From positions 1 to 64,000 of the forward strand of contig CBFDEM010000064.1 in assembly GCA_965603825.1 (NCBI GenBank): DNA of 64,000 bases. The letters are read 5' to 3'. Of the stretch, positions 25,176 through 26,543 are shown in pieces; position 1 is the first letter of the stretch, and every line of letters begins with the position of its first letter. The DNA is from Blepharisma stoltei ATCC 30299. Taxonomy: Eukaryota; Protista; Ciliophora. The notes beneath the pieces were generated by a model. It was not told the origin of the DNA. It ran no database searches and saw only the letters and a list, made by a program, of their open reading frames with translations. The translations under genes were made by a program, and so were the position numbers.

Positions 25176-26543
25176 ATGCTTAAGGCTCATTTACCAAAGC
25201 GCTTTTTCAGCACAATTCGAGACCTTAAAGCTAGAGAAATCCTTGATTCCCGTGGCTTTCCTACTATAGAGGTTGATTTATACACAGAAACACACATGTA
25301 CAGATCCTCAGTGCCAAGCGGCAAATCGACAGGCTTTTTTGAAGTTGCAGAGCTCCGTGATAGAGATCAGCCAAGATATGGAGGTATAGGCGTATTAACT
25401 GCTGCCAATAATGTGATGAATATAATAAAACCAGCAGTTTTAGGAAGAAATGTCACAGATCAGCAGAATATTGACAAACTTATGATAGAAGAATTAGATG
25501 GGACCTCGACTAGATATGGCTATATTAAAGCAAAATTAGGGGGAAACGCAATTTTAGGTGTATCTTTATGCTTAGCAAGAGCAGGAGCTGATGATGCTAA
25601 ACTGCCTTTATATGCATATATAGCTCAGCTTGCAAATAAAAAGACAAATAAGTTTATACTTCCAGTCCCTGCATTTAATGTAATAAATGGAGGCATACAT
25701 GCAGGCAATAGATTGCCTATACAAGAATTCTTGATTTTCCCAGTAGGGGCTGCAACTTATTCGGAAGCCCTAAGAATTGGTACAGAAGTTTATCATTCAT
25801 TAAAAAAAATCATAAAAGAAAAGCATGGACTTAATGCAGTCAATGTAGGAGATCAAGGTGGATTTGCTCCAAATATAAAGGAAAATGAAGAAGCTTTTGA
25901 CTTGATTTTAGAAGCTCTAGAATCCTCTGGATACAAGAAAAAAGTGAAGCTAGGAATTGATGCAGCTGCTCAGCGTTTTTATTCATTGGAGCATTTTAAG
26001 TATAATTTGGACTTTAAAAACCCTGAAACTGACGAAAGCCAAATGATAATTGAGCCTGATCTTGAACAAATTTATCTAAAATATGTGAAAAAATACCAGT
26101 TAGTTTCAATTGAAGACCCTTATTTTGATGACCACTGATGGGGTACAGAATTTCTTACCCAAAAGATAGGGAAAAAAGTCCAGGTAATAGGTGACGATTT
26201 ATTGACGACAAATCCTATTAGAGTGAAAAAAGCGATTAAAGAAAATGTGTGCAATGGTTTAGTGATTGAAATGAACCAGATTGGGACTCTGACTGAATCA
26301 ATTGAAGCTTGTTTATTAGCCCAAAAAGCTGGATGAGGTGTGATGGTAAGCCATAGATGTGGAGACACTGAGGATTCTTTTATTTCTGACTTATGCGTTG
26401 GACTTGGGGCTGGACAAATTAAAGCTGGAGCTCCTTGTAGATCAGAAAGATTAGCAAAATATAATCAGCTATTAAGAATTGAAGAAGAATTAGGAGCTCG
26501 AGGCAAATACGCTGGGGAGGCCTTCAGAACGCCTAAAGTTTAA
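25176..26543 (+). CDS. Enolase-family protein (455 aa) with a mitochondrial-type presequence and substituted catalytic residues
   Basis: [57 protein letters not shown]. Two TGA codons fall at conserved Trp positions. Confidence 0.92.

Follow-up and report, generated by a model that had tools for sequence, protein, structure and literature searches.

A candidate mitochondrial pseudo-enolase in the ciliate Blepharisma stoltei with both catalytic acid/base residues replaced and its metal site kept

Introduction

Enolases are dimers. In yeast numbering, E211 is the general acid and K345 the general base of the enzyme (PMC4450660), and these same two positions are altered in the engineered yeast enzymes E211Q and K345A and in an active/inactive heterodimer (PDB 1P48, 2AL2). 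Natural pseudo-enolases have been described from plants, moths and cilia. Arabidopsis ENO3/ENOc (At2g29560) is reported to lack enolase activity, with active paralogues alongside (PMC7479207). In Lepidoptera, Eno2 (BmEno2) is a lineage-specific paralogue, full-length and expressed, whose catalytic and metal residues are altered; a non-glycolytic role has been proposed for it (PMC5237310). ENO4 is a known inactive or altered paralogue (PMC7999657), and ENO4 and related ciliary proteins combine the enolase fold with a degenerate site. Independently of these, enolase has already been reported in ciliate mitochondria, with localisation to the matrix (bioRxiv 10.1101/2025.04.24.650466).

Here we describe an enolase gene at positions 25176–26543 (forward strand) of a 64,000-nucleotide stretch of Blepharisma stoltei ATCC 30299 DNA (the window; contig CBFDEM010000064.1 of assembly GCA_965603825.1, positions 1 to 64,000). 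Both catalytic positions are replaced in its product, which is a lineage-specific case of a known phenomenon. Our preferred reading, to which we give a probability of about 0.6, is that the product is a folded, Mg-binding pseudo-enolase of the mitochondrial matrix with a kept non-catalytic role, likeliest as a partner or regulator of an active twin enzyme encoded on contig C24 of the same genome.

The locus differs from each described system. The yeast variants are laboratory single mutants, whereas here both changes occur naturally and position 345 holds Glu rather than Ala. Arabidopsis ENO3, compared by its description, is a cytosolic plant protein of independent origin. BmEno2 is testis-expressed, has no reported presequence, and carries other substitutions, a changed metal ligand among them. 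The Dpy-30-like extension, deep divergence and broadly degenerate site of ENO4-like proteins are all absent from the protein described here. Also close are the mitochondrial enolases of Paramecium and Tetrahymena and the C24 twin, which has the same type of presequence but keeps E211 and K345. Within the partial library of literature available to us, we found no description of an enolase that combines a mitochondrial presequence with selective loss of acid and base and a whole metal site, and no report on a Blepharisma enolase or pseudo-enolase of this type.

The gene would be a natural double version of two classic catalytic knock-outs, with the metal site whole, a datable origin and an active twin as a control. 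The datable origin and built-in control make it a clean case for the birth of a pseudoenzyme after genome doubling, and a case for asking whether a dead subunit regulates ciliate mitochondrial glycolysis or gluconeogenesis. What limits its interest is that both inactive enolase paralogues and ciliate mitochondrial enolase were already known and that the gene has so far been seen in one species.

Gene integrity and transcription

The frame consists of 455 codons and a TAA stop, intact and without introns. Two in-frame TGA codons (26136–26138 and 26334–26336) align with conserved Trp residues, and UGA encodes Trp in B. stoltei (PMC9942806). The same 455-residue protein is present in the public annotation (P0001) of the genome, whose assembly comprises 41.46 Mb in 64 contigs, and Pfam finds both Enolase_N and Enolase_C in it, so that the full-length enolase frame proposed in an earlier, sequence-only reading of the window is borne out. 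An AlphaFold model has a pLDDT of 94.6 and TM scores of 0.93–0.95 to Toxoplasma and human enolase; because the alignment behind it consists of active enolases, it speaks for compatibility with a complete enolase fold only. The gene has none of the marks of a pseudogene: no stops, no frameshifts and no neutral pattern of substitution.

Several lines of evidence indicate that the letters themselves are real. First, the coding sequence is identical in a separate MAC+IES assembly, which may share reads with that of the window, after removal of two germline IESs of 73 bp and 70 bp (excision sites 26045–26046 and 26460–26461).

Second, 88–100% of the gene's words occur in 11 sequencing runs from three studies, seven of which carry a flag that the DNA may derive from them. 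Run X12, perhaps from another strain, holds 33% of them.

Third, contigs from two runs guessed by software to be RNA (X8 and X11) show no other letter at either catalytic codon. Their contig over 25179–26568 (forward strand; X8 record 7, X11 records 1–4) is bounded by the start and end of the gene and lies apart from the contigs of both neighbours, and for this reason resembles an assembled transcript. The gene is thus probably transcribed, the RNA status of these contigs being a guess.

Fourth, contigs hold a second allele over 26199–26357 (forward strand), 5.7% different from the pseudo-enolase, which keeps the GAA codon of E365. Its nine differences comprise five synonymous changes and four replacements at variable surface positions, an excess of synonymous change over neutrality at P = 0.03–0.07, calculated on nine sites and from an assembly bubble that is biased towards dense differences. 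We rejected an origin in the twin on C24 or in a fourth copy, because it is 94% identical to the pseudo-enolase against 76% to the twin and the genome holds no extra copy.

Each catalytic codon is a single base away from the canonical one, as would suit an assembly error or RNA editing that restores Glu and Lys. Against this stand the identical second assembly, the same letters in the transcript-like contigs of two runs, the second allele's agreement at the base codon (the only catalytic codon it covers), about 30 conserved positions altered elsewhere in the protein, and DNA that differs from the twin's by 29%. An assembly error is refuted as far as the contigs show, and we regard artefact or editing as having a negligible chance of being right.

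Active-site residues

At the general acid position (yeast E211) the protein has Q227, encoded by CAA at 25854–25856 where the twin has GAA; at the general base position (K345) it has E365, encoded by GAA at 26268–26270 where the twin has AAA. All coordinates in this section are on the forward strand. Two further departures lie in conserved motifs, namely K50 in loop L1 (yeast A38; AAA, 25323–25325) and, within 26352–26366, C395 and D397 in place of a phosphate-binding Ser and of Glu (the S375 and E377 columns; TGT and GAC), next to H393–R394, which are kept. Codon reading confirmed all four of these differences, as the sequence-only reading had listed them (including SHRSGET to SHRCGDT). In addition, Q266–R267 stand for a near-invariant Ser-Glu pair at the start of loop L3 (25971–25976).

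The metal site is whole. D262 (yeast D246; 25959–25961), E313 (E295; 26112–26114) and D340–D341 (D320 and D321; 26193–26198) are kept, and the equivalents of S39, H159, E168, D246, E295, D320, D321, H373, R374 and K396 are all intact. These include every Mg ligand of enolase (D246, E295, D320, S39 and D321), and the alignment agrees with the earlier claim that the Mg ligands and the H159, E168, R374 and K396 equivalents had survived. The general acid and base of an active enolase (EC 4.2.1.11) are absent, with Gln at E211 and Glu at K345. Yeast residue numbers were assigned by motif. With the pseudo-enolase as query, the wild-type yeast chains are outscored by PDB 1P48 and themselves outscore 1P43, which is consistent with this numbering, 1P48 being the E211Q and 1P43 the E168Q variant.

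The two replacements stand alone among the sequences compared. Both catalytic columns hold Glu and Lys in 119 of 119 other top homologues, Lys is present at the K345 column in 120 of 120 C-terminal fragments, and neither Gln211 nor Glu345 was found in any other of about 260 fully aligned proteins. They are not isolated within the protein. The sequence-only reading counted four departures from consensus; those four are real, but the total is far larger, with about 27 further changes at conserved sites: 28 of 177 near-invariant columns are changed against six in the C24 twin, and 31 of 206 conserved columns. Besides the L3 pair, the changes at near-invariant columns include, in the numbering of C395 and D397, K71I, D320H, L363V, S395C, E397D and T417A. 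The active site shows neither an excess nor a deficit of changes by the standard of the remaining conserved positions (4 against 2.3, P = 0.18), and both catalytic residues fall among the 15 of 144 invariant sites that changed (P about 0.01, post hoc).

These patterns bear on the proposal that the protein is a rewired enzyme, in which the Mg site, His159, Glu168, Arg374 and Lys396, together with Glu345, Gln211 and Lys38, would carry out a different reaction, such as exchange, epimerisation or metabolite repair, on a small acid, phosphorylated or not. In its favour are the strict conservation of ten metal and binding residues, several substitutions that ring the active site (the L1 Lys, the L3 Gln-Arg and Cys375), and the occurrence of enolase-fold variants with altered sites among the 50% representatives. 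The loop Lys, on which the sequence-only reading built this idea together with Glu345, is nonetheless nothing special, because otherwise canonical enolases carry the same residue (P0155 and P0247, read directly, and P0252, by alignment). Moreover, our searches returned no conserved orthologous family with this site, the site holds no excess of changes, and Glu is shorter than Lys and would repel an anionic substrate. Across the enolase superfamily, Lys or His serves as general base, and Glu is not known to do so. We consider a rewired enzyme improbable.

Duplication history

The genome contains four enolase-family genes: a canonical cytosolic enolase on contig C10, a canonical enolase with a presequence on C24, the pseudo-enolase and an ENO4-like gene. 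A separate cytosolic enolase, which the sequence-only reading had asked for, does therefore exist; the protein (L001 / P0008) ends in a 40-residue His/Pro/Glu/Ala repeat tail.

The C24 enolase (P0002, CAG9319978.1) is colinear with the pseudo-enolase over 455 residues, is 69% identical to it, keeps all 13 checked site residues and is its sister in the tree (support 100/99). The two genes lie in a colinear block (window 21375–41695; G000:C24 about 247300–258500) in which five duplicated genes have the same order and orientation. These are a sulfurtransferase-like gene, so labelled from reading its sequence (21375–22211, reverse strand; C24 twin 77%), enolase, the glycine cleavage H protein gene GCSH (26590–27018, reverse; 80%), a vacuolar-sorting-receptor-like gene (27276–28685, reverse; 71%) and Rab11. 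Many intervening genes survive on one side only, which suggests that useless twins were lost.

Across the block dS is 1.0–1.8, with 1.41 for the enolase pair. A Blepharisma-specific whole-genome duplication, common to B. stoltei and B. undulans, has been placed at Ks about 1.8 and about 112 Ma (PMC13685798). Because synteny, dS near the published peak and the published duplication agree, the pseudo-enolase is most simply read as the twin that this event, WGD-beta, gave to a mitochondrial-type enolase; a segmental duplication of similar age is possible.

Presequence and compartment

The first 12 or so residues (25176–25211, forward strand) form a predicted mitochondrial presequence. They are basic, without acidic residues and amphipathic, with an Arg-x-Phe-Ser type ending, and agree with a matrix presequence in a simple test of composition and moment; the first block of the AlphaFold model has low pLDDT. 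The sequence-only reading had likened this N-terminus to the presequence of the neighbouring GCSH. Homology with the presequence of the twin enolase explains it better, and since the twin and other ciliate-type homologues carry the same kind of extension, inheritance from a mitochondrial-type ancestor explains it best.

A mitochondrial enolase without catalysis also invites comparison with RNA escort. Ciliates import tRNAs, and the analogy with yeast Eno2p, raised by the sequence-only reading, would make the protein an escort for mitochondrial tRNA import. The import role of yeast enolase is indeed independent of catalysis (PMC4463592), but Eno2p is cytosolic and acts up to the outer membrane, where it hands tRNA to preMSK (PMC4463592), whereas the presequence here was inherited from an active twin. 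The pI of 6.4 is not unusually basic, since canonical mitochondrial enolases of the ciliate type span 5.4–7.0, and no dead copy would be needed for the task because active enolases can moonlight. With nothing specific in its favour, tRNA escort seems very unlikely.

Rate and selection

The pseudo-enolase has evolved rapidly. Its branch in the tree measures 0.59 against 0.078 for the twin, relative-rate tests with six outgroups give P < 1e-6, and it is four to seven times faster than the twin. For the enolase pair dN is 0.21, against 0.02–0.09 for other glycolytic pairs of the same genome; dN/dS is 0.15 for the pair and about 0.25 for the pseudo-enolase branch if dS is split evenly.

We compared this record with simulated neutral decay, in which the twin was mutated neutrally until an equal number of conserved sites had changed (2000 runs). 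The observed changes are far milder (mean BLOSUM +0.71 against −0.79 ± 0.32, a value reached in 0 of 2000 runs), one Gly or Pro has changed against 6.6 expected (P = 0.0015), and the absence of a stop occurs in 3.5% of neutral runs (P = 0.035). The proportion of changed sites is graded by conservation class (10, 26, 25 and 39%). Neutral decay is rejected.

The kept metal site constrains how long the active site could have been free. Had it been free over the whole branch (about 0.7 substitutions per site, with dS split evenly), about 12 of 15 site residues should have changed, against four observed, and conservation of all ten metal and binding residues has P < 0.01 for any freedom above 0.2 substitutions per site. 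With only about 0.05 substitutions per site of freedom, kept metal ligands (P = 0.27) and no stop (P = 0.06) are both compatible with chance. The fold thus appears to be under purifying selection; selection after the catalytic losses is weakly supported, as selection on the fold could predate them.

It is here that the main competitor of a kept role has its strength, namely that the gene is a late-stage decaying duplicate, a long-relaxed active enolase that lost catalysis recently and is drifting to loss, transcribed but functionless. The brief freedom just described would fit it, as would the restriction to one species as far as searched, the four- to sevenfold rate, the single base that separates each catalytic codon from the twin's, and a low GC3 and use of UGA, which suggest modest expression. 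Set against it are the chemically mild character of the two catalytic losses and the second-shell changes, the lack of any fixed stop, indel or Gly/Pro damage, and the second allele, which at 5.7% distance already has E365 and in which synonymous changes are in excess. We judge such decay unlikely, though deserving of more weight than rewired chemistry.

Orthologues and relatives

Homology searches, in which the protein was queried as stop-free pieces, returned no orthologue with the same changes from full-length, N-domain or C-terminal searches or from 50% representatives, and a DNA pattern for the Gln motif found no orthologue in metagenomes. This blank says little, because not a single other Blepharisma enolase came up in these searches. 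The sole metagenome match to the pattern was rejected as an intron-split plant-type enolase, and the best fragments (P0416 and P0296) are canonical. A broader idea, that the protein is a conserved, Blepharisma-wide mitochondrial derivative whose retained Mg/phosphate pocket serves a 2-PG/PEP sensor that controls matrix gluconeogenesis by forming heterodimers with the active enolase, or else a rewired catalyst in which Glu replaces the Lys base of the superfamily, is an unlikely one in our estimate.

Other altered enolase-like proteins also came up. A recurring group (P0229, P0231, P0248, P0272 and P0278) combines E168D with H373A and has K345 and E211 intact, and E211D occurs in P0151, P0163, P0174 and others; these are possible distinct subfamilies.

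Proposed role

Essential residues are replaced in a gene that is intact, expressed (on the evidence of contigs guessed to be RNA) and under purifying selection, in a genome with two canonical paralogues; since it is intact and apparently transcribed and its fold is conserved, a non-enzymatic job is probable. The sequence-only reading had offered a mitochondrial pseudo-enolase or a rewired enzyme. The first, with its mitochondrial-type presequence, has stood up, with both residues lost, canonical enolases elsewhere and a fold under selection, and the second has come out weak.

A scheme consistent with these observations would run as follows. Duplication would have given two copies of a mitochondrial-type enolase, of which the C24 twin would have kept the interconversion of 2-PG and PEP in matrix glycolysis or gluconeogenesis. 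In the other copy, Lys would have given way to Glu at the general base and Glu to Gln at the general acid, and the loops and second shell by which the site closes would have eroded. Negligible turnover of 2-PG and PEP is to be expected from this copy, because there is no base at C2, no acid at the 3-OH and a carboxylate beside the anionic substrate. The fold, the Mg site, most phosphate and carboxylate binders, the dimer-forming segments and the presequence appear to be kept, and the protein would presumably be imported into the matrix and fold around Mg. There it might pair with the active twin, or stand in for enolase in a complex of matrix enzymes. Itself non-catalytic, it could as a subunit stabilise, dilute or tune enolase activity, possibly while binding 2-PG or PEP; the Mg ligands may have been retained for folding alone or for binding a ligand.

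The partner or regulator role is favoured because enolases are dimeric, the twin would be present in the same compartment, and conservation is highest in the C-terminal segment of the interface. The last 70 residues are 77–80% identical to the twin, against 49–54% for residues 246–315, and we take this segment to carry much of the dimer interface, as in yeast enolase.

Neighbouring genes and other observations

An ENO4-like gene at 28972–30393 (reverse strand) encodes about 473 residues with one UGA read as Trp and a Dpy-30-like N-terminus. It lies 2.4 kb from the pseudo-enolase, so that two of the genome's four enolase-family genes are close together, and the C24 part of the duplicated block lacks a counterpart. 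Its product aligns Gln at the E211 column but has lost 10 of 12 site residues, the Mg ligands included, and is 28% identical to the pseudo-enolase; this distance and the tree reject derivation of the pseudo-enolase from it.

Head to head with the enolase, with 39 bp between the start codons, a gene at 24831–25136 (reverse strand) encodes a 101-residue ferredoxin-like protein with a basic N-terminus, no Pfam match and one paralogue (41%) on contig C21. The ferredoxin-like gene, the enolase and GCSH are three putative mitochondrial genes side by side. Across 23632–28948, the MAC+IES assembly (L013) has eleven insertions of 70–351 bp relative to the window, all germline IESs, of which two lie in the enolase gene and one in GCSH. 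At 39500–41700 a Rab11-like sequence and the next gene occur twice in tandem, both copies matching the same C24 stretch, and the first copy is split across frames. Positions 1–2000 of the window form a C-rich, low-complexity contig end with a GC skew of −1.0, probably degenerate telomeric or assembly-end sequence.

Two other glycolytic relatives in the genome deserve mention. In the C-terminal half of a 965-residue protein (L016; G000:C52:269228–270238) lies a PGK-like domain of divergent sequence; the protein may be of the ciliary central-apparatus type. A degenerate cofactor-dependent phosphoglycerate mutase (L026; G000:C4:590634–591287), in which RHG has become RSG and the Glu of LNERHYG has become Thr, stands beside three canonical copies and is a second candidate for a glycolytic pseudoenzyme.
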